This document shows, one piece after another, positions 11,821 to 36,597 of a stretch of 39,760 bases of DNA. The position numbers were made by a program, and so were the translations under genes. Every line of letters begins with the position of its first letter. Position 1 is the first letter of the stretch. This stretch comes from Macrostomum lignano. Taxonomy: Eukaryota. Under the pieces are notes generated by a model. The model did no database searches and was not told where the DNA came from. It saw only the letters and a program-made list of their open reading frames with translations. The stretch is from the NCBI GenBank assembly GCA_002269645.1, contig NIVC01004642.1, forward strand, positions 1-39,760, read 5' to 3'.

Positions 11821-13495
11821 TGGTGTCAGAGGAAACAGCTAACGATTAGTTCTTGAGTGTATACAACATTCAGCTATTTCAAAGGCAACAGAATCCATCA
11901 CATTCGATGAGGACACAGCCAGCCACAGCTCACAGCTCACAGCCACGAAGCGACGAGATGAAGATCGCCCTTCTGCTCACAGCACTTGGAGAAGGTCGGG
12001 ACATCTTTGATACATTCAATTAAGGAAAGCTCTGAAGCCGGTCGCAAATATGACAGCATCGTCAGTGCCTTTTGACAATTTCTGCAAACCACTCGAGACT
12101 GTGACGCACGCCCGGTACAAATTCAGGATGAGAGTTCAATACCAATTTGAGGACTTTGACCACTTTCTCAGCGACTTTGGAATCCGCATAAAGCCAGATA
12201 AGTTCGCTGCTCCGAATAACAGAGAAACGATATAATGCTATCCTACCGGATCCATTGCAATCGTAGAGCTCTTGGTGGCAGAGGCATCGGGATCGCAGGG
12301 GAAATGCAGGTACTATGGACGGTATAACAAATTTGGCAGCAAGAATTGTCCGTGCGGCATTCGGCAAGACTTGTACAAGTTGCTGAAGAAAGAACCTCTT
12401 TACTGCAGTAGGTTGAAAGAAGCAAAGGGGCACTGGAACACGACAAGTTGACCTCATGCATTGATCAGTTGAATTATGTAGGTGAGTTGCAGCTAGAAAA
12501 TTCGTGATCTGTATCAGCATCCACTATCACTAGCAACGCACTGCATTGTGTCAACGTAAAAACTTTTGTACGGATGCTCACAGAAGATTTCCAGGAGGTT
12601 CAGTACAAGATTCATACTGGAGCGGACGTGAACCACCATCACAACATACAACATCTTGTCAGGAGTTGGGACACAAACAATGGTCAAATGGTTTAGCGGA
12701 ACGAGCAGTGCAAACAGTTAAGGGCTACTTAAGCAAAAGTGAGGACATCCATCAAGCACTGTTGCACTGCCGAAACGCTCCGATTGAGAGAGGACTTCCA
12801 ACACCATCGCAACTGATGATGGGAAGGAAACTGCAATACCAGTTGCCAATCCCGGAAAAAGAATTCTGAATCCGAAGGAGCATTGGACGAAAGGTGAGAC
12901 TAAAAATTCCAATGGACAAATGGAATAAGCTAATGCGGTAGTGAAACCAGACAGTCAAAACTCTAAAGCCACTGAGCAAAGCAGATCAGGTGCGGGTGCG
13001 TCACGATCGACCCGCTGAACTGATACAGACAGATGAGACAGATCCTGAAATGTCTTACAAGTTCAAAACAGCAGCATGAAAGACCTAAAAGAGAAATAGA
13101 AGATCGCAGAACGTTATGCTGAGACCAGACTTGACTCTATTCTGGAAAGCATGCAAATTCGTTAAACCAATGAGACAGCAGACCAGGATTCAAGTGCATA
13201 ATTGCAACAGGCTTCACGGAGCGCACCAAGTGATTCAGTCACCCAATCGAAATCCAGTCGACGCGTTCTGGTCGAACTGTACAGCCGCTGGTCTACTACA
13301 GAGCGACCTGACTTTGGGATTTTGTAACTTTGCTAATTCAACGATGAGAGAGCTGACAATGACCGGGTTGTGATTTTATTCATAAAAGGGGGCGACGTTG
13401 GGATTATGTCTTATGGTCTATGCTTTCATTTATGAGCTCTTTAAGTGCTCATTTAAAGGCCAGAGATTTGAGGCTCCACAACACCACAACATACA
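11821..13495 (+). mobile_element. Internally deleted, decayed Ty3/Gypsy LTR retrotransposon (K02A2.6-like gag and integrase remnants)
   Basis: ...CA|TGGTGTCAGA primer-binding site (tRNA-Leu-like) at 11821; gag-like KIALLLTALGEGRDIFDTF (11961-12020) and FDNFCKPLETVTHARYKF; integrase C-terminal SNGLAERAVQTVKGYLSKSEDIHQALLHCRNAP...PSQLMMGRKL (12660-12869); polypurine tract AAAAGGGGGCGA at 13384-13395. Stops and frameshifts present; no RT/RNaseH seen. Confidence 0.8.
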
Positions 13496-13689
13496 GCAGA
13501 TGGACTGCCCTTAGAAGTTACTAGCTCACTAAGCCCCTCATGGGGAGCATTCAAATTCATAATATTTGACCGAGCACTTCCAAATCGAATTTTTCATCGC
13601 AGGCTTTACTGTATTATTTCTATTGTATACATTTCTATACATATCGGCTTTTTTTCTCCACCAGAGGGTTCCCAAACAAAATTAATTAC

Positions 13690-13690
<1 letters not shown>

Positions 13691-13755
<65 letters not shown>

Positions 13756-13762
13756 GGACAGA
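13691..13762. repeat. (CAGA)n microsatellite
   Basis: About 17 tetranucleotide units. Confidence 0.97.
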
Positions 13763-14216: not shown

Positions 14217-15083
14217 CTAGGCGGGCCTACTGTCGTACTTGGTGTCCCGACAGTTGCAGAGGGGGAAATTGCAGCAGTCCTGCAGCCAGGGCCGCCACAT
14301 GAGCTTGGCGAAGGTGAACTGGCTCGGCACTGAGCTCAGGCTCGCCTGATGACGCCTCTCAGCTTCGAGAATTTGCGGCACCAGACGACGGTAGCGCTCC
14401 GAGTCGGCAGGGACGATGGCGGTCTCGCGCTCGTCGGCGCTGAGGTCGTACAGCAGTGGCACCGAGTGTCGAACGCTGCCGAGGCCTTCCATGCAGCCGC
14501 AGATGTAGCGGCAGCCCTCGGTGCCTGGCAGCCAGTTGGGGGAGTAGTGCCGCAGCTTGAGCACCCCCTCGGGCGAGTTCCAACGCACCGCGTGCAGCAA
14601 GGTGCCGCAGTATTGAAATAGAAAGTCGTGAGGCGATTTTGTTGATTGAGGCTGGCGCAGGAGCTTTGTGATGCTGCGACCGTCGATGCCCGACGGTACC
14701 GGCTGGCCCATGGCCTCCAGCAGAGTCGGGAAGATGTCCATCTGGGAGGTCAGCGCGTTGCTCTGACTGCCAGCCGGGATGACGCCAGGCCAGCGCAGCA
14801 GTCCAGGCACGCGGATGCCGCCGTCAACGGCGCCCTGGCACTTGCTGCCCCGATAGATGCCGTTGTGGCCGCCGGCCCGCTCGCCCGTGTGCGTCGTCTC
14901 CTCGATGTGGCCGCCATTGTCCGAGCTGAAGTACACGATGGTGTCGTCGGACAGGCCACGCTTGTCCAGAGCGTCGAGGATCTGGCCGACGGACCAGTCC
15001 ATCTCTTCGATGTTGTCGCCGTACCAGCCGTGGGCGCTGCGGCCTCGATATCCGGGTACCGAATTGTACAACGGGGAGTGCAC
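14217..15083 (-). CDS. Arylsulfatase exon 4 (terminal)
   Basis: Acceptor gccgcag; VHSPLY...SDNGG...CCNFPLCNC...stop. Confidence 0.95.
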   Translation of the reverse strand: MHSPLYNSVPGYRGRSAHGWYGDNIEEMDWSVGQILDALDKRGLSDDTIVYFSSDNGGHIEETTHTGERAGGHNGIYRGSKCQGAVDGGIRVPGLLRWPGVIPAGSQSNALTSQMDIFPTLLEAMGQPVPSGIDGRSITKLLRQPQSTKSPHDFLFQYCGTLLHAVRWNSPEGVLKLRHYSPNWLPGTEGCRYICGCMEGLGSVRHSVPLLYDLSADERETAIVPADSERYRRLVPQILEAERRHQASLSSVPSQFTFAKLMWRPWLQDCCNFPLCNCRDTKYDSRPA

Positions 15084-17707
15084 CTGCGGCATTTTGGAAG
15101 AACGGGGCCAAGCATTAACTATTTGAAATTCAACGCTACCCCAGACTCAATCGGATAGTTCACACCTCCTGAGCACCGCTACCCCAGACTCAATCGGATA
15201 GTTCACACCTCCTGAGCACCGCTACCCCAGACTCAATCGGATAGTTCACACCTCCTGAGCACCGCTACCCCAGACTCAATCGGATAGTTCACACCTCCTG
15301 AGCACCGCTACCCCAGACTCAATCGGATAGCTCACACCTCCTGAGCACTGCTACCCCAGACTCTTTTGGATAGTCCACACCTCCTGAGCACTGCTACCCC
15401 AAAGAAAAATGAGGCAAAAGCTAGTAGAATGAGTCAGCTCCGAACCTGCAGGAAAGACATGAACAGCAGAAACGGCTTCCCCTCGTCCACCGCCTTGTCA
15501 AGGAACTCTTCGCCTTCCCAGACCAGCCGCTGGGTCAGTTTCTCAAATCGAATTGGCTGTTCAACCAGCTCGGTTTGCCGATGAAGCTGGCTGTTCACGG
15601 TGCGGACTAGGTAATCCGGCAGGCAGAATAGGAATCCGGTAACAAGGACGCCCAGCAAAGCTAAGAATATGCAGAGCTTTCTGGGCAGGATGCCAATTTT
15701 GTAGCCCACACCGAGAGAAGCCAATGTAGCCAGTAGTGTGAGGCTAATGTTTCTGTAGTAGTGAGGGAATCGCGAATGTAGGACCGACTCGCCTAGGCCG
15801 CTGAAATCTTTCAACAGAGTCAGCAGGCAGCCGTAGAAATAGTCGAAGCCGTGGTTGTTCGGATGGTGGCAGAAGTCTTTGCTGTTGCTGCAGTGGGCGC
15901 CCAAATGCCACTTTCCTGGTGGTGTAGTTGCGCAATAGTGGCGGATCGGGCATACAGTGCATACATGTCCCTCACACCCACCACCCCAAGACAAGCCCCT
16001 CACACCCACCACCCCAAGACAAGCCCCTCACACCCAACACCCCAAGACAAGCCCCTCACACCCACCACCCCAAAACAACCCATCACGCCCAGCACCCCAA
16101 AACAACCCTTCATATCCACCACCCTAAAACAACCCCTCACGTCCAGCACCCCAAGATAAGCCCCTCACACCCACCACACCAAAACAACCCATCACGCCCA
16201 GCACCCCAAAACAACCCCTCACACCCACCACCACAAAACAAACCCTCACGTCCAGCACCCCGAAACAACCCCTCACATCCAGCACCCCAAAACAACCCCT
16301 CACATCCAGCACCCCAAAACAACCCTTCACATCCACCACCCTAAACAACCCCTCACGCCCAGCACCCCAAAACAACCCCTCACACCCACCACCACAAAAC
16401 AATCCCTCACATCCAGCACCCCAAAACAACCCCCCACACCCACCACCCTAAAACAACCCCTCACGCCCAGCACCCCGAAACAACCCCTCACACCCACCAC
16501 CGCGAAAAAATCCCTCAAACTCAGCACGCAAAACAAGTCCCCACAGCACAATCTCCAAATCCAATAATTAAAATGTACAACAAAAAATGCATGAAGACCG
16601 GTCGATCGCTCACCAATCAGTCCGGTGCGGTAGCCAGACCGCTGAGCCACCTTGGCAAAAGTGGTCTCATTAGTTGGTAAACCGGCTTGGCTAGCCGTGA
16701 ACGGGAACACCTGCATCTGGATGCTGGGCACCATGCCCATCCTAATGGGATATTTTCCCGTCAGCAGTGCCGACCGACTCGGCGTACAAACTGGCGCGGC
16801 TGTCAGGTGGTGCGACAGCCGGACGCCCTCCTTGGCGATTCTGTCAACATTCGGCGTTCGAATTGTGGTATTGCCGTTGGCGCCTGTGAAGTTAGAAGGA
16901 AATTTTAGTAAATTAGGATAAAGCATTGAACTGTTTTGCAACCAAAGCTAAAATAATATTCGAATCAGGGAGGCTGTACGTTCGTAACCCGCATATATAG
17001 ATAACACGAATCGTTATCTATATATTAACAAAGCAGTGAATGTTTAGTCAGTATGTCATTTACATACATGTATATATATACTGCTAAGCGGGGCCGTAGC
17101 CCAGCGGTCTAGCGCAGGCTCTGATGTGCCAGCGGCCCAGGCTCGATTCCAAGTGCAGTCACATTAATTTGGGGCTACATTGGAATCTCGGCTTGGCTCT
17201 GCTCGTGCAATTAACGCCCAGCTTGAGGGCCAACCCCCAAGGCACAGTGAAGTGTACATGCCTTACGATCAATAAAGTTAGGGCCGCTGTACACTCCTGT
17301 GTGAGTGTGTGCCTGTGCGTGTGACTGCATACGTATCTGCGCGCTTGTGTGACTGCTCAGGGGAGTCGGCGGAATGCGGGCAGCAATGCTTCTTGCCAGC
17401 TGTGTGACAAATATGTCGCTTAAAGTGCGCCGGCCTGACATGCCACTGGCAAGACGTTAAACTATCTTAGAATAAATTTAAAGCATTCAAGAATTGAGAA
17501 ATGAAAATTAAATTAAATTAATTATTTTTTTCTTTTAGAACGGCCTACAAACCAGAAGGACTCACCGATGTCGCCGAAACCCAAGTCGTCCACCAGCAAT
17601 ATGAGGATGTTCGGCTGTTTTTTAGTTGCCTTCTCTGTTGGCGAGCTGACAACAAGACTCGGCAGCAGCAACAAGAGTGTTACTATGGCCAATTTGATCG
17701 GCGGCAT
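14217..17707 (-). CDS. Arylsulfatase of the steroid sulfatase (STS/ARSD/ARSE/ARSH) subfamily; complete, 4 coding exons, about 580 aa
   Basis: Exons 17707-17566, 16883-16614, 15915-15446 and 15083-14217 join with consistent phases 1/1/0. Signal peptide, NILILLVDDLGFGD, formylglycine motif CTPSRSALLTG, GKWHLG, hydrophobic hairpin (SLTLLATLASLGVG...IFLALLGVLVTGFLFCL) typical of STS-type enzymes, FSSDNGG, GGIRVP, C-terminal WLQDCCNFPLCNC. Confidence 0.95.
15135..15400. repeat. 43-bp minisatellite, about 6 copies, in arylsulfatase intron 3
   Basis: GCTACCCCAGACTCAATCGGATAGTTCACACCTCCTGAGCACC at 15135, 15178 and onward. Confidence 0.97.
15446..15915 (-). CDS. Arylsulfatase exon 3 (GKWHLG, membrane hairpin)
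   Basis: Acceptor caccaccag, donor CAG|gttcgg; 470 nt. Confidence 0.92.
15970..16500. repeat. About 28-bp C/A-rich minisatellite (CACACCCACCACCCCAAGACAAGCCCCT and variants) in arylsulfatase intron 2
   Basis: Tandem degenerate units; source of the ORFs at 15928-16429. Confidence 0.95.
16614..16883 (-). CDS. Arylsulfatase exon 2 (active-site CTPSR)
   Basis: Acceptor cttcacag, donor G|gtgagc; 270 nt. Confidence 0.93.
17090..17435 (+). mobile_element. tRNA-derived SINE in arylsulfatase intron 1
   Basis: A box GTAGCCCAGCGGTCTAGCG, B box GGCTCGATTCC, and a body matching the inverted copy at 28870-29280 over about 300 bp. Confidence 0.85.
17566..17707 (-). CDS. Arylsulfatase exon 1
   Basis: MPPIKLAIVTLLLLLPSLVVSS...QPNILILLVDDLGFGDI; donor G|gtgagt. 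Confidence 0.9.
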
Positions 17708-18159
17708 TCTTAAACGAGTCTTGTTGGATGTCAAGCTGAAGGCAAGATCGATAAAATCAATTAATAAACAGGTTGAAAAGTATTTCAGAGAAGAGACAAC
17801 AGCCAACCTCGGGTGAGTTGAATCCTGAGCAGAACCAGTGCAAGGCTCGGGTTAATATAGATAGTTTTCTAGTCGCTGAAAGGCTGCTCAATCATTCTGT
17901 TGAGTCAATTGGTTCAAAGGTGACAGCACTTGGATCAGGCCACAGAGCTCGGGTGTCCCTTATCTCAGACTCAGACAATCTTAAGCTCTCCACACGTTCT
18001 CTCCCTTGATTGAGGTCGTTATCAAGACTGTGTGTGGTTTATCTCTAACAGCTAAAAGAAATTTCAAATCAATTTCAAAAACAAAAATATGCAACCATAG
18101 TGTTCTGGTAGTTAAAAGGCCACAAGTGGTCGTCACTGGTGGGAAACACACTCTATAGC

Positions 18160-19412
18160 GGTCATTGTGAAACACACACATCTATGATTATTGCGAAACA
18201 CACACATTGCGGTCATTGTGAAACAAACAAATTTGCGGTCATTGTGAAACACATACATCTGTGGGCATTGTGAAACACACACATCTGCAGTCATTGTGAA
18301 ACACACAAATTTGCGGTCATTGCGAAACACATACATCTGCGGTCATTGTGAAACACACACACATCTGCAGTCATTGTGAAACACACATCTGCAGTCATTG
18401 TGAAACACACACATCTGTGGGCATTGTGAAACACACATCTGCAGTCATTGTGAAACACACACATCTGCAGTCATTGTGAAACACACATCTGCAGTCATTG
18501 TGAAACACACACATCTGTGGGCATTGTGAAACACACACATCTGTGGGCATTGTGAAACACACACATCTGTGGGCATTGTGAAACACACATCTGCAGTCAT
18601 TGTGAAACACACATCTGCAGTCATTGTGAAACACACAGAAACACACATCTGCAGTCATTGTGAGACACACAGAAACACACATCTGCAGTCATTGTGAGAC
18701 ACACAGAAACACACATCTGCAGTCATTGTGAAACACACAGAAACACACATCTGCAGTCATTGTGAGACACACAGAAACACACATCTGCAGTCATTGTGAA
18801 ACACACAGAAACACACATCTGCAGTCATTGTGAAACACACAGAAACACACATCTGCAGTCATTGTGAAACACACAGAAACACACATCTGCAGTCATTGTG
18901 AGACACACAGAAACACACATCTGCAGTCATTGTGAGACACACATTTGCGGTCATTGTGAAACACACATCTGCAGTCATTGTGAAACACATCTGCAGTCAT
19001 TGTGAGACACACACATTTGCGGTCATTGTGAAACACACATCTGCAGTCATTGTGAAGCACACACATCTGCAGTCATTGTGAGACACACACATTTGCGTCA
19101 TTGTGAAACACACATCTGCAGTCATTGTGAGACACACACATTTGCGGTCATTGTGAAACACACATCTGCAGTCATTGTGAAACACACATCTGCAGTCATT
19201 GTGAAACACACACATCTGCAGTAATTGTGAAACACACATTTGCGGTCATTGTGAAACACACACATCTGCAGTCATTGTGAAACACACATCTGCTGTCATT
19301 GTGAAACACACACATCTGCAGTAATTGTGAGACACACATCTGCAGTAATTGTGAGACACACATCTGCAGTAATTGTGAAACACACACATCTGCTGTCATT
19401 GTGAAACACACA
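18160..19412. repeat. About 1.25 kb of 20-24 bp minisatellite (GTCATTGTGAAACAC(AC)nATCTGCA) with a 32-bp sub-array at about 18630-18930
   Basis: Tandem units with variable CA number; lies between the plakin 3' end and the arylsulfatase start. Confidence 0.97.
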
Positions 19413-19871
19413 CATACACGCGGCAATCGCGTGACACTAGATTATTCCTGCATAAAATTTAACCGACAGCAAACAGTAAAATAATTTTTTTTCAATTAAA
19501 AAATGAACAAATAAACGGTTCAAACATGCTCTGCAGAGGCCTATTGAGTGGCACTAAAAATGGTTTACTGAGGCAGCTCCGAAACGGTCAAATTGCATGA
19601 ACTAGTCTAGTAGGAATCTAGAGTCTAGTGGAAAAAAGAACCCACTATCGAATCCCTTTTATCCCAAATAAAAAAGCCATTTCCCTTACGGGCCATGAAA
19701 CGCGCAGATATTTGGCAAAAAATTAAAATCATTGATTACACAGAACGCTTGGTGGATGAATGATCGATGCATGCTGCAGTCAATATACATGTATATTTTT
19801 ATTAAAGAGAAAAATAGACAAAATTTTTATTGATTTTTTTTCTTTAACAAAACAAGAAATTTCTGATATTC

Positions 19872-20012: not shown

Positions 20013-20830
20013 TCACTGCTTGGTCGCCTCATCGGCAGCAGCGGCCGCCGCGGCTTCCTGAAGCTGACGCTGGCGCTGTCTGGAAAGAGACTTCGCCTTC
20101 GCTCGCTGGAAGACAGAGTCCGCGTCGTCAACGACAGGGCCAGTAGATGTAGCCGTTGAAGTAGCTGACGTCATAGCAGTAGCAAACGTCGTTGAAGTAG
20201 CCGACGTCGTTGAAGTAGCCGACGTCGTTGAAGTAGCCGACGTCGTTGAAATAGCCGACGCCATAGCAGTAGCCGAAGTCGTTGAAGTAGTCCATACCGC
20301 TTCCGGCAACGTTGACACTATCGGCAAACCGGACGTCGCCGCTATCGAAATTGACGCAGTCGCTGTCGTCATGGTCTTTGTTGTCGCCGTTGTCGTTGCC
20401 TTTGTCAAAGCAGACGTCGTCGTCGTCGTCGGTGTCGCGATGTCGCGGTGTTCGACACCGGTGGGCATCGGTGGTCCGAGTCGCACGGCTGGAATGTCGC
20501 GGCCTTTCAGGTCTGGCACCAGACGCGTCACTTTGGTCAGCTCGGCAACCATGCGTGCCTCCTCAGCCGCCTGCTTCGCCGCCGCTTCTTCCCCCTCGTT
20601 GTCTCTATCGCTAGACGTCGATGTTAGCGCAGTCGGCTGATGCGAGCTGGCGCTCTGGTTGCGACTGCGCCAGCGGAACATGGCAGCGGGGCTGCGCAGC
20701 CCGCTGGACCCAGCGTCGGCGGAGCCAACAAGGAAAGGGCTGGACACTACGGTCGGCGACAGAGACAGCGACAAGGACAACGCGGCGGCGGCTGACGCCG
20801 AAGCGGTGTCAGTTGAAGCCTCCGCCAAGC
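20013..20830 (-). CDS. Plakin-like gene terminal exon (Ala/Thr/Ser-rich, TSTTSA repeats)
   Basis: Acceptor ttcccag, phase 1, matches the giant-exon donor; 818 nt = 2 + 272 codons to TGA. Confidence 0.8.
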
Positions 20831-23800
20831 CTGGGAATGCAGAATGTGTGCATTATGACCTTACTTTCCAGAAGAGGAAAGATGAGATGATATATGAAAA
20901 AAGAGAAAAGAGGCGAGAGAGGAAATTAGATGGCAGACACGAGAAAGCTGAGAAGAGACAGAAACTTTGTTCGGCACTTGGAGCCCGATACTGAACCTCG
21001 AATACGCACCATAAAAAGCCTTATTTTGCGCAGACATCAAACAGCAAATCGAATCCAGTAGCCAAGTTTTCGGCTAAAATTATTAGAACTAAAAACATCG
21101 TACTAATAGTAGCATGGTGCACAATTAAATAAAACAACAGGCTCACTCGGTAAGTCGTCCCGATGCCCGCAGCCGGTGTCCACCATCGGGCCGTCATGAA
21201 TCCGGATGCCATCTGTCTGGATGTAGTGCGCGCGCTGGCACGGCTCGTCGAATCGCATCCGTTCCGGGTGCTCCGGGTGGTAAGTGAAGTAGGAGCCGGA
21301 GTCGTCGCCGAGCGCCGTCGCGTCTAAAGGCCGGTAGAGCGACACCGTGTCGCGACAAGCGATCGAGCGGGACAGCGGCTTATCGAGCCGAACAGAAGGG
21401 ACCACCACCTCTGGGTCGGTCTGGCACTCTCGGCTGCTAATCTCAATGTCCGAATTTGAGAGCGCATCTAGACAGGCTTTCACGCTGGCTACGGCGGTCT
21501 CTGTGTGAGTCTGCGACTCCACTTCGCAGCATTCTGGACCTGTTGAGGTGCGCATCTCGCTTTGCACAGCGTCCACAGCCCAGAGCGAACCAGTGTCCGT
21601 AGTTTTCATTGGCTGCGACTTCACGTGGCCAAGGAGAGAGTCTGGTTGATGCCACGAGCTTGATACAGCTTGCTGGACAGCTTCAGACGACAAAGTGGTC
21701 CCAGCCTGACATACGGCATCGGTCGTGGGCAGAAGCTCATTATCAACTTGACTGTCGGCATGCCTTGTCTGCTTAGCAACAACTTTGATGGGCTCACTAT
21801 CAGCATCTAGCTTGACCGAGACGCACCGCTGCTCAGACGATAGTTCGTAAATACTTCCAGTATTTGCTAACTTCAAACTTGAACTCGCATTGACACTCGC
21901 CTGGCTGAAACTCCACGTACTCACACCGGCTGACGATCCCGTCTCGCAGTGTCCTAACTGAGTGTGGTCGGTCTGATTGCAACTGTCCGAATATTTCAGG
22001 CTGGGTTCGCGGCTTGCATGAAGTCTTTCGGTAATGATAAACTGCTCAGGTTCCTCAATGTCCAGTGTCTGCGTCTCGCACTCCTTTACATTAATTCCAA
22101 GGTGTTGACTGCCTGTCTGATTCAAATTAGGCAGCCTAGCAACAACGAAATCGAGTGTACCCGGTTGAATCTCTGCTCTGGTGTTGACTGTCTCTTCAGC
22201 TTTGCCTGGAGGACGCGCAACAACCACAGCGACGCTGCTGTTGGATCGCGTAAGACTCCACTCGCCGAGAATAGCGGAGTCTGAGAAGTCAGACCAGCTG
22301 CGACCAGCCTGACATTCGTTGTCCTCTCTGTCAAAGAAAAAGCTGCATCCAGACTGGCATTCGAAGTTCTCGAATTCTGAATGGCTGCAGCCAGCCTGGC
22401 ATTCGACATTTTCTCTACCCAGGAAGAAGCTGCAACCAGCTTGGCATTCGAAATCTTCTGAATTCAAGCCTCCGGTACCGGCCTGACATTCACTATTAGT
22501 TATCTCAAAGGTACCAGAGCCCATCTGATTTTCAGCCTCTTGCCTATCAAAGAAGAAGCTGCAGCCGGATTGACAAACTGCGTCGACCTGACATTCGACC
22601 CGTTTCGAATCCAACACCGGGCCCATGTTGACCGAGACGTACTGCTGCTGAGATGGGACATCGTGAATGCTTCCTGTCTCGGCTAGCTGGAGCCGACTGT
22701 TCGCTCTGACAGCATCTTCAGCGAAGCTCCAACAGCTCACACCAACCGATAACTCGATTTCGCGTGTGAAAAACCTCGAGTCAGTTTGTTCGCTGCCATC
22801 CGAATAACTGATTTTAAGGCTCTGAGTGGGTTGTCTTTTCTCAATAATAACTTCCTGATCCGTTTGCGTTCCGAATTCTTTTAAAGGTGTCACCAAGTGC
22901 ATGCTACCTGTGTGAGCCACTGCGGCAACTCTTGCCACGGCGGAACTGTCACTTGAAAGCCTCTGCGTACGAGCAATTGCTTCGGCAGTTTGTCCAAAGC
23001 ATAGAGCCAGAACTTCGTCAGTCGCTGGACGAATCAGGACGGAGTCGTCTGAATACTTGCTCCAATGTAAGGTGCTCCATTCGCTGGGAACGGCTGAGTC
23101 AGTTAGTTCCCGACTGTCTGCTTTGCCAGTCTGGCAGTTTGAGTTTATCATCTCAATATCAATGCTTCCGCAGGCTCTGACGACCTCCTCGCGGGTGTCT
23201 ATTTTGGCTGAGACAGATTGCGGCTCACTAAGAACCTTATGCAGACTACCGGTCTCAACTAACGCAATTGAATTTGAGCACACGTTTGCCTGACTGAAGT
23301 CCGTGAAAGCATTTGTACCCACCGAAACGATTGCATCGCTGAGCAGGAAGCCACTGCAACCAGCTTGAACCTCGGCATTGAGGCGGCTAAACAGACTGCC
23401 ATCAGTTTGAATTTGGCTGCTGTAAGTCTCGGCAACTTTTTTTATCTCCGTTAGTGCTTCTGGTGCGTCCGTCTGGATTGCCATGTCAGTAAGTACAACC
23501 TGCAAGTGCTGACTGCCTGTGTGGCTCAGTTCTGGCAGTTTGGCAATGGCTGAATCAGTCTGCACAGTCTGTACGGCCTCGGATGATGCGTCACTGGAAT
23601 TGGTGACCCAGTGGGCAGCAGTATCCGCTAGCACCGGGTGCACGCACATGGAGGCTAAAGCTGACACAGGCGATGGTGGGCGCTGCTGTTTTGCCAATGA
23701 CTCGCTCCACTCTCTTGAAATAAGCTGCTCCTTGAACTGAAATTGACTACAGCCAACTTGACAGTCGCTCTCCACTCTGTCAAAGTAGCTGTAACCGGTC

Positions 23801-26800
23801 TGACAGTCGCTCTCCATTCTGTCAAAGTAGCTGCAACCGGTCTGAGAGTCGCTCTCCGTTCTGTAAAAGTAGCTGCAACCGGTCTGACAATCGCTCTCCG
23901 CTCTGTCAAAGTAGCTGTAACCGGTCTGACAGTCACTCTCCGCTCTGTCAAAGTAGCTGTAACCGGTCTGACAGTCGCTCTCCGCTCTGTCAAAGTAGCT
24001 GTAACCGGTCTGACAATCGCTCTCCGTTCTGTCAAAGTAGCTGCAACCGGTCTGACAGTCGCTCTCCGTTCTGTCAAAGTAGCTGTATCCGGTCTGACAA
24101 TCGCTCTCCGTTCTGTCAAAGTAGCTGTAACCGGTCTGACAATCGCTCTCCGCTCTGTCAAAGTAGCTGTAACCGGTCTGACAATCGCTCTCCGCTCTGT
24201 CAAAGTAGCTGCAACCGGTCTGACAGTCGCTCTCCGCTCTGTCAAAGTAGCTGCAACCGGTCTGACAGTCGCTCTCCGCTCTGTCAAAGTAGCTGTAACC
24301 GGTCTGACAATCGCTCTCCGTTCTGTCAAAGTAGCTGCAACCGGTCTGACAGTCGCTCTCCGCTCTGTCAAAGTAGCTGTAACCGGTCTGACAATCGCTC
24401 TCCGTTCTGTCAAAGTAGCTGTATCCGGTCTGACAATCGCTCTCCGTTCTGTCAAAGTAGCTGCAACCGGTCTGACAGTCGCTCTCCGCTCTGTCAAAGT
24501 AGCTGTAACCGGTCTGACAATCGCTCTCCGTTCTGTCAAAGTAGCTGTAACCGGTCTGACAATCGCTCTCCGTTCTGTCAAAGTAGCTGTAACCAGCCTG
24601 GCACTCACTATCTGCTTTGTCGAAAATACTGAATCCAGCTTGGCATTCAGTATGAATTAAGTCGAAGTAGCCGGGCCCAATCTGACACCCTGTCTGATTA
24701 AATGAGAAGCTGCTGCAGCCCATCTGAGTCACAGCCTCATTAGTCCCGCAGATAGCCTCAATGGCGACATTGTGAACTCCAACATCGTAGCAGCTAGCTG
24801 TGTCTGTTAATAGAGACTGCGCGTTCGCCTGACCATCAACACCATCCCATGCACTGATCCCGGCGCATGACTCTGCATCCAGCCGGTCGAAGTAACTGTT
24901 ACCAGACTGCTCGCATTCGTCCAGCCGATCAAAGTCGCTGGCCCCTGCTTGTTGGCAGAAATTCACACCGTGGAATGCGCTTGCTCCGGACTGATGACCT
25001 TGATCCGTGGTGTGGAATGCGCTCGCTCCAGATTGATGACCTTGATCCGTGGTGTGGAATGCGCTCGCTCCAGATTGATGACCTTGATCTGTGTTGTGGA
25101 ACGAGCTTGCTCCAGATTGATGACCTTGATCTGTGGTGTGGAATGCGCTCGCTCCAGATTGATGACCTTGATCCATGTTGTGGAACGTACTTGCTCCAGA
25201 TTGATGACCTTGATCTGTGCTTTGGAACGCACTTGCTCCGGACTGATGACCTTGATCCGTGGTGTGGAACGCGCTTGCTCCGGACTGATGACCTTGATCC
25301 GTGGTGTGGAATGCGCTTGCTCCAGATTGATGACCTTGATCCGTGTTCTGGAATGCGCTTGCTCCAGATTGATGACCTTGATCCGTGTTGTGGAATGCGC
25401 TCGCTCCAGATTGATGACCTTGATCCGTGTTGTGGAATGCGCTTGCTCCGGACTGATGACCTTGATCCGTGTTCTGGAATGCGCTTGCTCCAGATTGATG
25501 ACCTTGATCCGTGTTGTGGAATGCGCTCGCTCCAGATTGATGACCTTGATCCGTGTTGTGGAATGCGCTTGCTCCAGATTGATGACCTTGATCCGTGGTG
25601 TGGAACGCACTGCACCCAACCTGCTGACCTTGATTCGTCTTGTCGAACGCGCTGCACCCAACCTGCTGACCATAATCGACCGATTCAAAAGCGCTGGCTC
25701 CTGTTTGAACACCGAATTCAAACGCAAAGTGAAGATGCGTCCGCACGCCGGCAATCGCGGTGGCTGGAGCGCAGATCACGTGACCTATAGCCGGCTCCGG
25801 ACAAGTCTGCTCCCCGCGACTGAAACTCTCTGCGCCCGCCCAGACCGCTATGTCCTTGCTAGTGATGCCTGTGTTCACGCTGTCGTGAGCAGCTTCAGGT
25901 GGCGAAGTCTGCGCACTGGCGCAGTCGAACTGCGGTCCAATCTGCACAGAAATATCACTAGCGTCTTCAAGTGCCAGGCGACATTGAACGCCGCTGTCGG
26001 AAAGCCCTTCGATACGCAAATCCGCCAGCGGACTGTCAACGAACTGATCAACTGTAAGCAGCTTTCCGGCCGCTGCGCACCTGGTCTCGACTATGTCGGG
26101 TTGGTAGCGCATCGACGAGTCGACGCGACGCTCGTCGCGATCCTGCCGTCTCCAACGAGTCAGATCGAGTGTGTCGCTAGCCTGATCAGCAACGGACTCT
26201 GAATGCTTCGTTGCGACAACCAACACGCTGGCGGTGGGGTTTTTAGCCGTTAGCATCGTTTGGCTCGCCTCGGAGAGGCTCGGCGGCCGGGCTCGAACCT
26301 CGGACTGACGGAGACCGACAGGAGCGGTTGTCTGCGCCGCCTGGTGTCTGAGGACTGGCGGCTGCCGCATTGACTGCTGCGGCTGTGGTGGTGGCGGCGG
26401 TGGTTGTGGCTGCATCACTGCACTCGTCTTAACTAAAGCATTTGCTGTCGCCACTGTCGAGGCTCCGACGACAACGCCGCTGACGACAAAGTCCACAGAC
26501 GGCTTCGACTCGGCTGGTTTCAAATCCAGGTGGCCAAGTTTAGCTGTGGTTGTCATGGAGACCTCAGCGAGGACTATCGGTTCAGTGGTATCGTAATCGT
26601 CTGACGGAGCTTTGGCTGCGGATTTGAGGCTGCGTTGCAGCAGCTCGAGACGTTCGCTGCTGCATTGTAGAAGTCTGAGTTTTAATTGGCGAGTTACGAA
26701 TCGAGATACATTATAACTATGCTGATTTGATATACTAATGATATGGTATACTACTGATATGGCATACTACTAATGAGATACTACTGATATCATTTACTAA

Positions 26801-29800
26801 TGATATGGTATACTACTGATATGATATACCAATGATACTACTAATATTATATACCGTACTTCTGATTTGATAGTGATAGTTTGATCTCACTCGGACTCCA
26901 AGTCGCCGTTCGCGCGCCAGTTTAAGGCAGTGCCGACTTTTCTAGTTTCTGTGGCTGAGCAGCAGCACAGTTCCTCTGGACTGCCGCAGCCGCAGCAGCA
27001 GCAACAGCAGGCGCAGTCTGAACCGGCACGCTGGAACTCCGCCCAGCTGGTCAGGTGCTGCCACAGCTTCGACACCAGCGTGTGCAGGCGGACTAACTCG
27101 GTGGTTGACAGCCTGTATGGATCGTTGCCTGCGGTACGATTGTTAACAATGGGCTATGGGTGTACATCATATCATTCATTTCTTATATAGATCTTGTATA
27201 CGGAATCAACAATCAGCTGTAAAAAACGGTACCAAAATAACAATAAGAACTTGCTTACGTAGGCTTGACTTCACGCGCCCCTTGCGTGCTATCTCGCTCG
27301 CCGCTTCTGAAAAATTAATTAGTTTCTTAGACTAATTGGCCCATCTGTGGCCCGCCTTACCCGACCCCCGATTTCTCTCCAGCCACCCCACTCCACATCA
27401 ACCCCTTTTCAGTTCATTATAATTGGCCAAGTCAGCCTGTCTTCCCCGACCCCCGATTTTTCTCCAGCCACTCCACTCCGCATCAACCCATTTTCAGTTC
27501 ATTCTAATTGCCCATGGCAGCCTGTCTTCCCCGACCCCCGATTTCTCTCCAGCCACTCCACTCCACATCAACCCCTTTTCAGTTCATTCTAATTGGCCAA
27601 GTCAGCCTGTCTTCCCCGACCCCCGATTTCTCTCCAGCCACTCCACTCCACATCAACCCCTTTTCAGTTCATTCTAATTGGCCAAGTCAGCCTGTCTTAC
27701 CCGACCCCCGATTTCTCTCCAGCCACTCCACTCCACATCAACCCCTTTTCAGTTCATTCTAATTGGCCAAGTCAGCCTGTCCTACCCGACCCCCGATTTC
27801 TCTCCAGCCACTCCACTCCACATCAACCCCTTTCAGTTCATTCTAATTGGACATCGCAGCCTGTCTTACCCAGCCCCCCATTTTCCTCCAGCCACCCCAC
27901 TCCACATTAACCCTCTCTTTTTCATTCTAGTCGTCCGTCAGCCCGTTTTACCCAACCCCTTATTTCTCTCAATTGTAGAACACCAGTGAAACGCACCGTC
28001 GGTGCTAACAGTTCGGGCACGCAATTCAGCCAGCATAGTGGCCAGTTTTTGCCTAGCGCTGCCCTCAGAATCAGCGGCGGCCTCTTCGGCTAGCAGAGTT
28101 TGTTCTAGTAAATCGTAAAATTCCTCGGCGCAAGTTGGTTTAGAGACGGCAATTAGCTGGTGGATAAAGAAATCAGTGTAATATTATGGCTTCAGTTGGT
28201 TCAACGTGTATCCTGATTTTTAGATACATATGTAATGTACCTCACTACTCATGCAATCGTATAATCGACAAACTAACCGACTGTTTGTCCAGCAGCCCGG
28301 TGAACAGTTGCGCAATATGTGCCACCGTGTCTCGCTTTAGCTTGGCAATTAACGCAGTCCACTGATCCGATAACTGACGCTTGAGTCTACAGATTGACGT
28401 GAGTTTAAGTAAATATATATATAAAACTATATTGGTTAACACCATGGGTTGATTCCCATGGTCGGGCTTCACAAACTAGTAAGTTAGCACTGCATTTTAG
28501 TAATAATATTAATAATTATTATATTCGCATAAGGGTGGTGGCGCAACGACTTCGACAACTGAACACATTACTGCACGCAGGCACGAAGTCACACACACGC
28601 TCACACAGGGTGCACAGCGGCCCTGACTTTCCAATCGTCAGGCATGTGCACTCTCCGTGCCTTGGGCGGGGGTTAGACCTCATGCATGGGTGAGAACCTT
28701 ACGGAAGTCCTGAACTATGCATGAAATAGTACCCGAGGATCTGACGCGCGAGAGTCAGACACGTTTACCGCTGACCTGCTGTGTCCCCCAACATCGCATC
28801 TTCCTGAGAGACAGTCCGTCCGTCTTTTTATATTTTTTAATTAGAGGCAGGGGGGGTGTGTGCACCCTGGCGCACTTTAAGCGACATAGGCACACAACTG
28901 GCGAGAGGCATTACTGCCCATTCCGCCGACTCCCCTGAGCAGGCATACAAGCGCGCGGATACGTACGCAGGCACACACTCACACAGGAGTGTACAGCGGC
29001 CCTAACTTTATTTTATCGTTAGGCATGTACACTTCACTGCGCCTTGGGGGGTTGGCTCTCAAGGCCGTTAATTGCACGAGCAGAGCCAAGCCGAGATTCC
29101 AATTCAGCCCCAAATTAATGTGACTGCACTTGGAATCGAGCCTGGGTCGCTGGCACACCAGAGCCTGCGCTAGACCGCTGGGCTACGCCCAAATTAGTCC
29201 AAATTAATGTGACTGCACTTGGAATCGAGCCTGGGTCGCTGGCACACCAAAGCCTGCGCTAGACCGCTGGGCTACGCCCCCCGTCCGTCCGTCCGTCTTA
29301 CCTAACGGCTCTATCAATAGAGCTAACATCTCGCGGCGGAATCCAGACTGTTATAGACGGCAGCGTCACCTCGTTGCCATCAAGCAGACGGACTCGCCAC
29401 TGCAGTCGATCGGAGTTGTCTAGAATGGTCAGCTCTTGGCCTTGCGCTACGACGAACTGCATAAGGTAGAGTTTATAAACTGTTAACCTTTAACCTTTAA
29501 TATATAGCAAGGTTCTCTATATTAAAGTCTCGTGTGAGCTGCTTTGTTTAGTTGAATAATCGTAGCTTGATTTACCAAAAACCGGATAGTTCTAAAGACA
29601 GAAATATACTCAAGACATACTACTCATGGAGGTGAAGCGACACGCGAGTAAGTATTGATATTAGCGAGTAGATACATACAGCATCAAAATTTTTTAACAG
29701 ATGCTTTCCATCGGTATGTAGCGTTATAGCCTAGACACCAGGGTGTTTTGTTAATTCAAAATTATTCTAGAAATATATAAAATATAGAGACAAACATGTT

Positions 29801-30639: not shown

Positions 30640-33600
30640 TTAGTTAGTTAGTTAGTTAGTTAGGTAGTTAGTTAGTTGAACTCAAGACTCACAGTGGCCG
30701 TTGTGAGTAGTCGCTTAGTCCGTTCCGGATGATGAAGATGGAACAGGCACTCCAGCTGGCGCGAAGCGTGTGAAAAACTGCGCCCCATTCGGCCACCAGC
30801 GTCGTGGCATTCAACGTGGAAAGAGTTGTAGTCGGCCGCGTTTCTCGAGTGCAGGCGCAGCAGCACGGAGAGCTGGTCCAGCCACTGCCAGCAGCGCTGA
30901 GCGGAGCCGGCAAGCGGCTTGCGGACTGTCGAATCCAAGGAGCCTGACGACGGCTCGGATGGAGGACCGCTGGTGGACAGCCGGTGCGCCTCTGATGTCA
31001 CGGCTGCGGCAGAGGACTGCGGATGGGCGATCGATATTGATGGGGGCTGATCGGCCGCCATTGTACAGCTTCCCTCTCTCCCTGCCCCTCTCTCCCTACC
31101 CCTCTCTCCTGCCCCTCTCTCCCTGCCCCTCTCTCCCTGCCCCTCTCCCCTGCCCCTCTCCCCCTGCCCCTCTCTCCCTGCCCCTTTCTCCTGCCCCTCT
31201 CTCCCTGCCCCTCTCTCCCTGTCCCTCTCTCCCTGCCCCTCTTTCCCTGCCCCTCTTTCCCTGCCCCTCTTTCCCTGCCCCTCTTTCCCTGCCCCTCTCT
31301 CCCTGCCCCTCTTTCCCTGCCCCTCTTTCCCTGCCCCTCTTTCCCTGCCCCTCTCTCCCTACCCCTCTTTCCCTGCCCCTCTCTCCCTACCCCTCTCTCC
31401 CTGCCCCTCTCTCCCTGCCCCCCTCTCCCTACCCCTTTCTCCTTGACCCTCTCTCCCTGTCCCTCTCTCCTTGACCCTCTCTCCCTGTCCCTCTCTCCTT
31501 GACCCTCTCTCCCTGTCCCTCTCTCCTTGACCCTCTCCCCTTGCCCTTCTATCACAGCCCCTCTTCCTCTGCCTCTCTCTCCCTTCCTTTCTCTTTCAGC
31601 CCCTGCCTCGCTCCTCCTCTCTTTCCCTGCCTTTAAGCAAATTTTAATACTATAATTCTCTGTGCTGATTAATAATATTGCTTCGAGTTGCTGAACGAGT
31701 GCATGCGCACTTCAAGCTGTGAGCTCGGGTATTTACCAATAACTATGATAGCTATATAGCGGTTCTCCTTGCCTGCATGCAGACCATTCGCCCTACCGAT
31801 GCTCAAACTTGCTCACCGCCTCTCAAAATCATAGTTCTTATATTCGCGCTGTATAGTTAATTAAATACAGCACTTGGCTGCAGTGGATGGAATTCTTTAG
31901 CTTAGTCAACTAGGAGATTGTATTGGCGCCCCCAATACTAGTGCAGAGCCTATACTACGAGTACTGTAGTCCATGTTTGTGTAAATTAATAAACAGCAAG
32001 CTGAGGCAGTCGTAGGCTTAGGGATTTTGTTTTCATTAGCACACTAAGAATGTTGAATAGCTATTCTTCGACGAGACAGCAATACTTAACTGTGTTCATT
32101 TATAGCTCTCTTTTGAAAATCTGATTTCAAATCTCAGCATTGCCGCTATTTTCGAGAATATCGATCTTTTGTGCCTTTGATGATTGTATAGGCTGTACTG
32201 GTAGCCAAGTTAAAAGGCAGGGAGGGGCAGGGAGAGAGGGACAGGGAGAGAGGGACAGGGAGAGATGGGTAGGGAGAGAGGGACAGGGAGAGAGGGGTAG
32301 GGAGAGAGGGGCAGGGAAAGAGGGGTAGGGAGAGAGGGGCAGGGAAAGAGGGGCAGGGAGAGAGGGGCAGGGAAAGAGGGCAGGGAAAGAGGGGCAGGGA
32401 AAGAGGGGCAGGGAAAGAGGGGCAGGGAAAGAGGGGTAGGGAGAGAGGGACAGGGAGAGAGGGGCAGGGAGAGAGGGGCAGGGAGAAAGAGGCAGAGAGA
32501 GAGAGAAGCAGGGAGAGGGCCAAGGAGGGATGGGCAGGGATAGAGTGAGAGAACAGGAGATAAGACGGGAGACAAGAGAAGGGAGAGGGAAGTCGTGAGA
32601 ATAGAGCAAGGTATACATGTAGAAAGGAGTTATTAAGAAAAGGGTAGAGAGATCCGAATACGGAGGTGGAGACAAGGAGGCGTATAAGGAAGGAAACTGA
32701 ATGCATAAATACATGTAGGAGTATTAGGATGCTAAAGTGAGTAAATTTCCCGATAAATTTAGACAGATGCAACACAACAGAACAGATAACTCTCTTACGC
32801 CAAAGGTGTCCTCCAAGCTGGCAATCTTGGCTATGAAGTCAAGCGAAGCGATGTTGTCTCCGACTCTTCGTCCTGCGACGCTGCACTGCTCTCTAGCTGG
32901 GCGAGACAGGTCCTGTTATGTAGCAACAATTAATTTAATAAACAGCACGGGGCTTAGGCTTGGGCTTCCTGAGAGGGAAGAGCCATGTACTTTTCTTAAA
33001 TGGGGGACGCTGTTAACTTTAGCTGCCCTACTAGTGTAGCATTCTGGTCACAATTACCACCCGATTTGACTCTTGGAGCAGTTTGAGTTACCCATGACAT
33101 CAGGTTTAACTTTATCGCCTTTATTCGACCTATAGCCTTACAACAGCGCTGACGACCATTCTATCGATTCCACTGACTCTTGAGCACATGGGTGTACAGC
33201 GGCCTAGACTTTCTAATCGTCAGGACTCTTAATTCATGTCTTGTATGTTGGCTCTCATAGACAACTGCAATGGAATGAGGCTACACAAGGAGCTATAGAT
33301 GCTGCTATTGCTAGGTAGTACATTTTAAACCGATTGCAGTGTCAAAATGTGTGCATTAAATGCATAGTCTATGGCCGCTCCATATCTCGCGCAAATCAAA
33401 CAGCGTGAATTGAATGAAAAAAGCGTGCATTAAATGCTTAGTCTATGGTCGAGACTCCAGATTGAATCGTTATAACAATACTGCTCGATACTTGGTTTTT
33501 AGCGTTTAAATGTCTTGGCCACGAGTGCGCGAAGCCTATTATACATTTAGTATCTGCGGTATGCTCTAAGAGAACGCCATAGATAACGCCATAAAAGGTT

Positions 33601-34939: not shown

Positions 34940-35465
34940 TGAGTGGCCTAGGTAATAAAATAGGATCTCTGTTAAATGATTTGGTCTGCTAAGATAATAA
35001 AATAGGGTCTCCGTTGAATGATTTTGTTAGCCTGGGTAATAAAATAGGGTCTCCGTTGAATGATTTTGTTAGCCTGGGTAATAAAATAGGGTCTCCGTTG
35101 AATGATTTGGTTAGCCTGGGTAATAAAATAGGGTCTCCGTTGAATGATTTTGTTAGCCTGGGTAATAAAATAGGGTCTCCGTTGAATGATTTGGTTAGCC
35201 TGGGTAATGAAAGAGACTCTCCTTTGAATGATTTTGTTAGCCTGGGTAATAAAATAGGATCTCTGTTAAATGATTTGGTCAGCTAAGATAATAAAATAGG
35301 GTCTCCGTTGAATGATTTTGTTAGCCTGGGTAATAAAATAGGGTCTCCGTTGAATGATTTGGTTAGCCTGGGTAATGAAAGAGACTCTCTTTTGAATGAT
35401 TTTGTTAGCCTGGGTAATAAAATAGGGTCTCCGTTAATTGAATGATTTGGGTGGCCTGGGTAATA
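34940..35465. repeat. 42-bp minisatellite (GGTAATAAAATAGGGTCTCCGTTGAATGATTTTGTTAGCCTG), about 12 copies
   Basis: Tandem units; source of the NDFVSLGNKIGSPL ORF at 35014-35286. Confidence 0.97.
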
Positions 35466-35775
35466 AAATGGGCAAGCTTATATAATAATTTTTTAAAGTT
35501 GGCTGACGTTGGTTTGATAAGACTGTCAAACTGAACTCTCATAGAACATGCTTAGAAAAGATAGATTCAATGCTTCAACAAAATCAAACAAGACGACAAA
35601 TCCTATTTCGATGTGTGATTGGTTGGATTGACAGATCAGCCAACAAGAATTCCTGCACAGCCAATAACTGAGCACTATAGATAAGCTATATGTTTTTGCT
35701 AACATGTAAAGCTGAATGGATAAAGTTAAACCGCCAACTTTCGAAACAACACATTCACTGCTTATAGGCACGCTG

Positions 35776-36578
35776 GTAAGTCATTACAGTTAATTAAGTT
35801 CTACAGCAATAATTTGCTGTAGTTTTTTAACCTTGTTACGAGTCTGCGCTAGCCTTATTATTAAATGAAATTATAAAATAAAATATTAAAGTCACACTTT
35901 GCATGGACGTCTTACGATTCAAACTCGTGTTTAAACTACGCTCGAAACTAACTTGTGACTGCGTTTAACGCACAGTTGGTTCATAATACTGCATAACTAT
36001 TAGGTTATTCCGATGCATCTCTTACTTAAAATACTTTGTTGTTGTTGGCTTACTGAAAACGGAATTGTACAGCCAAGATTGTACCATTTTAGATCGGTTT
36101 TTCGCCACTTTGAACTAGATAAACTAGTGTCGACTCTTTAAGGTTTACTAATCAATAGGACTTCTACAGCTGCAGTCCCAGTTCCCGGTTTGTTGCTAAA
36201 TCCGCTTTCCTTTTGATTAAAAGATTTCAAGACAGCTTTCAGTGCGCCTTGGTTTGGCATTGACTTTGGACAACTACATGCCAGGCGCTTGCTTCTATTT
36301 TTGGACAAACATCAGCTCAAGATTAATTAATTAACGCGTCTAAATCCGCGCGGTTTCGATTTGACAAGAGTCCTTGACAATGCGTGAAAATGAAAAAATG
36401 AGTCCGCTGTGCCTGCGTACAAGTATTTATCCATAAAGAACTAAATGCTTATATCCAGCATCTGCAATGTCACCACAACCATAATCATTAGGAATCACCA
36501 CACAATCATCTATTTGAACTTCAAAAACAAATCAATCCAGATGCTCAAGCTCCATACCAACTCACCTTTAATTCACAG
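35776..36578 (+). other. Probable 5' UTR intron of the GPCR gene
   Basis: Consensus donor CTG|GTAAGT at 35776 and acceptor ctttaattcacag ending at 36578, 19 nt before ATG 36598. Confidence 0.5.
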
Positions 36579-36597
36579 ATTTCACTCCAAAACTGCA

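Follow-up and report, generated by a model that had tools for sequence, protein, structure and literature searches.

The question raised by contig NIVC01004642.1 of Macrostomum lignano (assembly GCA_002269645.1), whose entire 39,760 bp form the window analysed here, is what is encoded by a giant exon on its minus strand that is rich in short motifs of the xQT type. A first-pass annotation had taken this exon for a multivalent array of binding sites for the dynein light chain LC8 (DYNLL), which would build a stiff rod replacing a missing coiled coil. We showed that the giant exon encodes the tail of a lineage-restricted plakin-type protein, composed of ~490 aa with a plakin SH3, the exon itself and a Thr-rich end, and that this protein has neither a coiled-coil rod nor plakin repeats. 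Alignment of the repeat units further showed that one 14-residue repeat family underlies both tandem arrays of the exon as well as its degenerate runs. To judge from its sequence, the SDCQTG array does not look like an LC8 site; by the same kind of analysis, six to eight motifs in the C-terminal modules are plausible LC8 sites. The reading which we favour, tentatively and with rather less than even confidence, is that of a beta-type repeat tail accompanied by modules at which LC8 may be recruited to act as a dimerising clamp.

Two further copies of the locus were reached through the neighbouring sulfatase gene, namely NIVC01001500.1 (L001) and the homeolog NIVC01000040.1 (L002). The exons on which the description of the gene is based are:

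29301..29489, minus strand: plakin-type SH3 exon in an open frame (Pfam PF17902 SH3_10, E=4e-9, 36.8 bits against a cut-off of 22.8)
26891..27153, minus strand: preceding exon, with the end of a spectrin-like repeat and then the Cys run CACCCCCCGCG (donor GA/gtgaga, phase-compatible with the giant exon)
21147..26659, minus strand: giant exon of the plakin-type gene of Macrostomum lignano, 5513 nt and ~1837 codons (open frame, splice sites, annotation, and the ratio of non-synonymous to synonymous substitution rates, dN/dS or omega)
20013..20830, minus strand: terminal exon with a Thr/Ser/Ala-rich tail (stop codon at 20013-20015; acceptor cccag/GC in phase; annotated gene end at 20013; same sequence in L001)

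The initial proposal of one giant exon was borne out by a canonical acceptor at 26659, where the exon begins (...ctacaatgcag/CAGCG), by a canonical donor at 21147, where it ends (CCGA/gtgagc), and by a minus-strand frame that is open throughout from 26766 to 21106 (1887 codons). The gene annotated by NCBI ends at 20013, extends upstream of 27716 and has a product of 2602 aa, a length compatible with the giant exon, the terminal exon and ~490 upstream residues. The annotated coding sequence, the splice phases and the synonymous bias of the observed changes, all of them genome-derived, place the giant exon and the plakin exons in a shared transcript. By its SH3 the protein belongs to the plakin family, since the upstream exon matches PF17902 and aligns to the SH3 of desmoplakin (3r6n) and of plectin (3pe0); the spectrin-like exons flanking the SH3 were not recognised by Pfam. 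Neither a plakin rod nor plakin-repeat domains were detected in the tail: a Pfam search over 1817 aa of the exon gave only a sub-threshold match to HrpE, the L+E+K content of the exon product is 0-21%, and AlphaFold2 (AF2) predicts it as beta or unstructured. Because of this L+E+K content a coiled coil is excluded, and the absence of a coiled coil, as the annotation had it, is upheld.

Other views of the gene were considered and rejected. A separate gene starting from the ATG at 26556 is ruled out by the annotation and by the synonymous-biased changes upstream of that ATG. A secreted or membrane protein, suggested by the hydrophobic segment of aa 94-112 (Kyte-Doolittle value 1.74), is unlikely, as this segment is Val/Gly/Ala/Ser-rich and internal and carries an indel in L002; given the plakin head, the protein is probably cytoplasmic. 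The cysteine run of the preceding exon (SDCACCCCCCGCGSPEELCCCS, 26970-27010, minus strand, within 27153-26891), to which L002 adds one Cys (S to C), could be a palmitoylation-type cluster. In the terminal exon, an 18-bp in-frame repeat (20154-20290, minus strand) generates Thr/Ser/Ala runs of the TSATST type, and its unit number differs in L002.

The dN/dS values, the synonymous-biased changes upstream and the splice phases together with the annotation indicate that the giant exon is coding, moderately constrained and spliced to the plakin exons. In the comparison of the window with L002, dN/dS was 0.37 in the C-terminal unique part (30.5 synonymous and 39.5 non-synonymous changes, P=1e-4 against neutrality) and likewise 0.37 in the N-terminal unique part. 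The preceding exon shows 5 synonymous changes and 1 non-synonymous change; in the giant exon, the corresponding numbers for the 34 codons ahead of the first ATG are 4 and 1, and the intron at 26660-26890 has ~6% mismatches and a 14-bp indel. The annotated product of L002 measures 2685 aa, and its giant frame is intact (1887 aa from the ATG). L001 retains an uninterrupted frame for 1544 codons. Upstream of the arrays this frame is shifted by the loss of 1 bp from a GGGG run at ~385 (equivalent to ~25815 of the window), and the loss may be a genuine frameshift of one homeolog or allele or else a homopolymer error of the PacBio assembly. A pseudogene is ruled out by the omega of 0.37 and by retention of the frame in three copies, the G4 deletion of L001 standing in a PacBio assembly. 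Between the window and L001 omega was 0.7, which is not significant. These two copies form a mosaic, differing by 1.3% over 23713-21867, by 0.08% over 21867-19450 and by 0.06% over 4815-13762, and on the sequence the boundary at ~21860, inside the giant exon, looks like a recombination or gene-conversion breakpoint.

Homology searches returned nothing for the tail. The C-terminal 880 aa found no match in a word-seeded protein-library search or in an exhaustive HMMER search against 1.84 billion representatives, the plakin head with the N-terminal part found none in the protein library, and neither the array profile nor the C-terminal part matched any PDB sequence. The library searches also missed the annotated M. 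lignano products of this locus (2602 aa) and of L002 (2685 aa), and for this reason the absence of a homolog means, at best, that there is none outside the protein's own cluster. The 14-residue unit appears to be a new repeat family, for which neither Pfam nor the PDB nor the protein libraries supplied a relative; of these negatives, that of the libraries is weak.

The repeats occupy the following parts of the exon:

24970..25653, minus strand: HQSG-type array of GASAFH[NT]TDQGHQS (FH[NT]TDQGHQSGASA); Tandem Repeats Finder (TRF) period 42 bp, 16.3 copies, 90% identity
24595..24969, minus strand: older degenerate 14-mers and spacer between the arrays, with CQQAG, CEQSG, TQMG, CQIG and two ECQAG (translation, alignment)
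23759..24594, minus strand: CQTG-type array of G[YC]SYFDR[TA]ESDCQT, which holds the 19 SD[CS]QTG; TRF period 42 bp, 19.9 copies, 94% identity
22282..22590, minus strand: degenerate run of ~7 ECQAG/CQSG 14-15-mers between modules M2 and M3, described below (translation aa 1393-1495, alignment)

All repeat units align in one register, with the consensus G-x-S-x-F-x7-Q-x, and the HQSG units, which are in register with the CQTG units, have only G, S, F and Q in common with them. These four fixed residues are spaced i, i+2, i+4 and i+6. When the units of the window and of L001 are pooled, G1, S3, F5 and Q13 show zero amino-acid changes, with synonymous variants at G1, S3 and Q13 despite the fixed amino acid, and amino-acid variation is limited to unit positions 2, 6, 7, 8, 9, 11 and 12. 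The array variants comprise 11 synonymous and 17 non-synonymous types, against an expected synonymous share of 19.5% (P=0.012, with transition bias uncorrected). The residue before Q may be C, H, Q, E or N. T follows Q only in the CQTG array; the HQSG array has S at this place, and elsewhere it is taken by A, V, M or I.

Motif counts in the exon (SD[CS]QTG 19, CQT 20, TQT 2, IQT 3, VQT 3, ECQAG 6) reproduce the ~19 SD[CS]QTG of the annotation, all in a single 42-bp tandem array, and the dispersed EFGTQTD, MAIQTD, SQIQTD, ECETQT, RECQTD, HYIQTD, SEQTD and CNQTD were all recovered along with the ECQAG. The 19 SD[CS]QTG are a single amplified motif and not 19 independent events. The copy numbers in the three genomic copies are:

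SD[CS]QTG: 19 in the window, 9 in L001, 13 in L002
HQSG: 15 in the window, 24 in L001, 25 in L002
All Q.G.S.[FW] units: 47 in the window, 46 in L001, 51 in L002

The two arrays shift their size in opposite directions across the copies, while the total number of 14-mers remains about steady (window 23759-25653; L001 357-2400; L002 2700-4700). This steady total could reflect a constraint on total length, chance at n=3, or mis-sizing of the assembly. The units are homogenised per locus, position 8 being only T in L002 and a T/A mix in the window, and L002 has one extra unit inserted in the ECQAG/CQSG run between M2 and M3. Comparison of the copies at sequence level showed that the CQTG and HQSG arrays are young, unstable in size and evolving in concert.

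For the scoring of LC8 motifs, an LC8Pred-style matrix was rebuilt from PMC6607443 (Table S4 without its viral entries, leaving 70 cellular binders and 30 non-binders that contain the anchor) as a binder matrix plus a non-binder-normalised matrix with a pseudocount of 5. It reached a leave-one-out area under the receiver operating characteristic curve of 0.81, and the threshold of 12.1, set at a 75% true-positive rate, is passed by 23% of the non-binders; the median known binder scores 16.7. The LC8 anchor consists of Q at 0 with a mid-sized residue (T, I or V) on either side, at -1 and +1, and the flanks favour P, D or E at +2, a large side chain at -3 and a polar residue at -4; several like charges are unfavourable, and charged or deviant anchors abolish binding (PMC6607443). 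The repeats scored as follows:

TESDCQTG (CQTG array): -3.9
AESDCQTG (CQTG array): -1.2
TDQGHQSG (HQSG array): -0.8
ECQAG-type 8-mers: -12 to -20

None of the 8-mers of the arrays passes the threshold (shuffles expect 1.0), just 1.4% of known binders have a score of -1.2 or less, and the flanks of the CQTG array reach just 3.8 even when the canonical T is substituted at -1. No C or H at -1 occurs among the 70 cellular binders. The positions conserved over all 14-mers are Q(0), G(+2), S(+4) and F(+6), whereas the -1 and +1 positions of the LC8 anchor vary. The proposal that the SDCQTG array and the many ECQAG provide dozens of LC8 sites thus finds no support in the scores, in the unconserved -1 and +1, or in the copy numbers of 19, 9 and 13.

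The part of the exon downstream of the arrays has a different organisation, with three clear modules and one degenerate module of ~170-190 aa each, every one of them preceded by a 14-mer run:

23167..23739, minus strand: module M1, EWS ... SHTGSQHL ... MAIQTD ... SQIQTD ... VETGSLH (module alignment)
22591..23124, minus strand: module M2, EWS ... AHTGSMHL ... FGTQTD ... SEQTD ... AETGSIH (module alignment)
21763..22281, minus strand: module M3, EWS ... NQTGSQHL ... CETQTL ... CNQTD ... ANTGSIY (module alignment)
21147..21762, minus strand: partial, more degenerate fourth module and tail, with RHADSQVD, TDTGSLW, RECQTD, HYIQTD and VDTGCGH (alignment)

With 32% identity between M2 and M3 (E=2e-22) and 26% between M1 and M3 (E=1e-11), the modules are, by alignment, true paralogs. 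The elements conserved among them are EWS, R-P, [HQ]TGSxHL, [TI]QT, YSDxxxQTD, GxSxWSF and TGS[IL][HY]. In 3000 shuffles of the 1193-aa non-array sequence and of the C-terminal 879 aa, the observed counts of three patterns outside the arrays were reached in 0 shuffles:

[TIV]QT: 7 observed, 0.8-1.0 expected
.QTD: 8 observed, 0.25-0.36 expected
TGS.[HYW]: 7 observed, 0.02-0.03 expected

Within the C-terminal 880 aa, seven 8-mers reach the threshold of 12.1, where shuffles give 0.68 (P<5e-4). Five of the seven use known anchor residues, and in the remaining two position -1 is C or N. The candidates, together with one borderline motif, are:

23467..23490, minus strand: TDMAIQTD (Q1098), 21.2, above the median binder; best candidate, identical in the three genomic copies
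21742..21765, minus strand: RHADSQVD (Q1673), 17.0; SQV anchor residues each known from some binder
22858..22881, minus strand: KEFGTQTD (Q1301), 16.3; same module position as TDMAIQTD and KECETQTL
21415..21438, minus strand: SSRECQTD (Q1782), non-canonical with Cys at -1, 16.0 through its flanks alone; -5 differs in L002
SDSCNQTD, with N at -1: 14.8
22063..22086, minus strand: KECETQTL (Q1566), 13.8; hydrophobic +2 unfavourable under the published rules
23401..23424, minus strand: YSSQIQTD (Q1120), 13.4; the paralogous positions EQTD and NQTD are poor anchors
21211..21234, minus strand: RAHYIQTD (Q1850), borderline, 12.1 after rounding and outside the count of seven; aromatic -2 disfavoured

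TDMAIQTD, KEFGTQTD, KECETQTL and RECQTD fall in one alignment column with the common pattern [LV][KT][ED]xx[TI]QT. At the second module site QTD alone is conserved, with I, E or N at -1, which is a poorer fit to LC8. A stricter LC8 pattern of the ELM type, which we take to require K or R at -3, fits no C-terminal site. The claim that the dispersed TQT and IQT motifs look LC8-like is corroborated by these scores and by the equivalent positions of the best motifs in modules of 26-32% identity. An LC8Pred-type check, which the annotation had proposed, comes out in favour of the C-terminal modules and against the arrays. Linkers between sites are 6 residues long in the arrays, and in the modules they are 14-24 residues within pairs, with more than 150 aa between pairs.

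With respect to structure, the expected disorder-prone background applies to the arrays, whose FoldIndex is -0.17 and -0.26, and less to the C-terminal modules, for which it is slightly positive (+0.01 to +0.16). For 11 CQTG units (7-row paralog alignment) AF2 predicted 11 regular strands of 11-12 residues, one per unit, with turns at G-[YC]; for module M2 (4-row alignment) the predicted local distance difference test score (pLDDT) was 31, with no secondary structure, a value well below the 57 obtained for the array. These predictions are compatible with beta-forming 14-mers and disordered modules, and are not decisive.

According to the reading that we favour, the 14-mers would be beta-strand units with one conserved face, which might fold by themselves and stack (as a beta-meander, a solenoid or cross-beta structure) or dock as strands on a partner, and the arrays would serve as a length-tunable spacer standing in for the rod. 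The "CQT" of one array would be a by-product of the beta unit and no LC8 anchor. LC8 requires -1, 0 and +1 and makes no contact to +4 or +6; the conserved Q, G, S and F of the repeat are two apart, on one strand face up to +6, and because this is unlike what LC8 needs we take the "CQT" as incidental. The module sites (about four canonical and two or three near-canonical) would be plausible LC8-binding elements, at which LC8 dimers might clamp two tails in parallel register, giving few clamps and no stiff bead-on-string rod. In other plakins the job of in-register dimerisation is done by the coiled coil.

Several points weigh against this reading. The AF2 model of the array has low confidence (pLDDT 57, predicted template modelling score 0.41), and Foldseek of this model against the PDB gave only insignificant beta-helix matches (E at least 4e-3, template modelling score no higher than 0.42). 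The low pLDDT of the module may stem from the 4-row alignment and not from disorder. The candidate 8-mers are identical in the three genomic copies, bar position -5 of SSRECQTD, which is uninformative at 1-5% divergence: the copies are too alike, and zero changes in six 8-mers would be expected with P of ~0.15. The enrichment of the module motifs is partly inherited via internal duplication, and the array sizes rest on a PacBio assembly with possible mis-sizing. Finally, in KANK1 L2 at least 15 non-canonical sites, each of them weak by itself and missed by LC8Pred, together give cooperative LC8 binding (PMC12803091).

Among the alternatives, the one that survives best, unlikely as we consider it, is that the whole tail is a disordered low-complexity spacer or condensate region, in which the 14-mers act as stickers, LC8 plays no role, and the TQT-like motifs serve another partner or the structure of the modules. 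The absence of any homolog found in Pfam, the PDB or the libraries, the negative FoldIndex of the arrays, the pLDDT of the module and a relaxed constraint (omega 0.37-0.7) all agree with such a tail, as do the misfit of the second module site, which keeps QTD only, and the ~23% of TQT-containing non-binders that pass the threshold. The invariant G, S, F and Q with their synonymous turnover argue instead for a defined structural or binding register, and the first module site has flanks typical of binders (K/T at -5, E/D at -4 and D at +2).

It is less probable still that both long arrays represent in-frame expansions of minisatellites, tolerated and in themselves of little function, with only the older modules and the plakin head being functional. 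This would explain their internal identity of 90-94%, the up to two-fold difference in array size among the copies, the homogenisation of units per locus, and the fact that all six frames are open across the arrays. Against it stand a period that stays a multiple of 3 with the array frame intact in three copies, the synonymous excess with four invariant positions, and the similarity of the unit totals (47, 46 and 51) though the single arrays vary.

The first-pass idea itself, namely that the SDCQTG array, with or without HQSG and ECQAG, is an LC8 ladder of dozens of weak xQ[TS]G sites which act cooperatively and form a rod in place of the coiled coil, keeps a small chance, slightly below that of tolerated minisatellites. 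We retain it because of the KANK1 precedent and the spacing: an 8-mer and a linker of 6 residues add up to the 14-residue period, and linkers of 6 and 9 residues are those which yield homogeneous complexes (PMC10046861). As KANK1 arrays of motifs unrecognised by LC8Pred do bind, the low scores are compatible with LC8 binding; the sites of KANK1 L2 are also singly too weak (PMC12803091). The invariant Q of all units, the presence of each flank residue of xESDCQTG, taken singly, in some known binder (G at +2 in two), the absence of a coiled coil and the disorder-prone FoldIndex of the arrays fit such a ladder as well. The opposing evidence is the shortfall of the scores (-3.9 to -0.8 against 12.1, and 3.8 for the flanks even with T at -1), the C or H at -1 that none of the 70 cellular binders has, deviant anchors being known to abolish binding (PMC6607443), the conservation of 0, +2, +4 and +6 rather than -1, 0 and +1, the change from 19 to 9 and 13 CQTG units among three copies in one genome, and the beta structure of its own which AF2 assigns to the array. 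The notion that the exon has more sites than the well-known LC8 clients is further weakened by KANK1, with at least 15 predicted sites and 7 measured (PMC12803091).

Marginally less credible is a two-part device, in which a copy-tunable 14-mer array would bind 30-50 LC8 dimers through KANK1-like C/H-Q-T/S anchors and canonical TQT module clamps would be added to it; if true, this would be the longest LC8 ladder known, with a rod length set by repeat number and differing between homeologs. The weakest proposal, that the units bind metal or form cross-links in a hardened matrix inside the cell (of the cell-web or stylet type) which the plakin head anchors, can draw on swaps between the arrays that involve typical metal-ligand residues (C/H at unit position 12, D/H at position 6, C/Y against A at position 2), on the 9.6% Cys and 19% aromatic residues of the CQTG array and on the Cys run in the preceding exon, yet we regard it as very improbable, given that this support is purely compositional, that C at position 2 is unfixed (a Y/C polymorphism) and that the older ECQAG units have no His.

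The favoured reading of a beta-type tail with possible LC8 clamps may be compared with three known systems. The first comprises the multivalent LC8 clients ASCIZ/ATMIN, Nup159 and KANK1 L2, which the M. lignano protein resembles in its several TQT/IQT 8-mers with binder-like flanks and scores up to 21.2 in a poorly structured acidic region, in the lack of another dimerisation element, and in an array spacing that suits LC8 stacking. It differs from them in that the good sites are few (6-8) and spread over ~800 aa; members of a pair are 22-32 residues apart, and 150-200 aa separate one pair from the next. A continuous stiff LC8 rod is for this reason not expected. The dense array, moreover, does not pass as a series of LC8 motifs, either by its anchor or by its flanks.

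The second system is that of plakins with a giant 3' exon coding for the rod, namely desmoplakin, envoplakin and periplakin. The M. lignano gene is similar in having a PF17902 SH3 inside spectrin-like exons, followed by one giant exon which makes most of the protein. In contrast to those plakins, its giant exon has neither heptad or coiled-coil composition nor plakin-repeat domains, its head is short (~490 aa) and its tail has no detectable homolog.

The third comprises short-period beta-repeat systems, that is, beta-solenoids with coils of 12-15 residues (ice-binding proteins of insects and grasses) and aromatic/Gln/Ser-rich cross-beta low-complexity domains. A 14-residue period, an alternating Q-x-G-x-S-x-F on one face (where ladders of Gln, Ser and aromatic residues would be expected) and a variable other face, as well as the all-beta AF2 prediction, are shared features. 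Unlike beta-solenoids, the 14-mer array has no sequence or significant fold match, and AF2 shows 12-residue hairpin strands for it instead of a two-strand coil. Disulfide-braced coils are not expected in the array, because the protein is probably cytoplasmic and the Cys is unfixed.

Should LC8 bind at the module sites, the M. lignano protein would be the first cytolinker of the plakin type to dimerise by means of the LC8 hub rather than a coiled coil, and its spacer length would change fast by gain and loss of repeats. Since M. lignano is a tractable model (transgenesis, RNA interference), the LC8 reading can be put to the test. For annotation, the value of the locus lies in a giant exon that is real, under selection and restricted to its lineage and that holds a new family of 14-residue repeats, and in the lesson that "xQT" within a tandem repeat is not by itself an LC8 signal.

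The plakin-type gene has two neighbours in the window. Directly downstream and in the same orientation lies a steryl-sulfatase/arylsulfatase gene, BOX15_Mlig016134g2 (585 aa, 14217-17851, minus strand), which shows 1 difference in 790 compared codons between this locus and L001. Upstream, on the opposite strand, there is an intronless open reading frame of 519 aa for a rhodopsin-family G protein-coupled receptor (36445-38004, plus strand; PF00001, E=4e-20). The contig is also dense in minisatellites, which were observed at 27356-27970, 26722-26837, 18136-19441, 8806-9409, 30998-31711, 32127-32838 and 34975-35477; examples are an intronic 85-bp unit present 7.3 times and a 16/46-bp unit just upstream of the acceptor of the giant exon. 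Several of these minisatellites have many open frames and vary in length from one homeolog to another.

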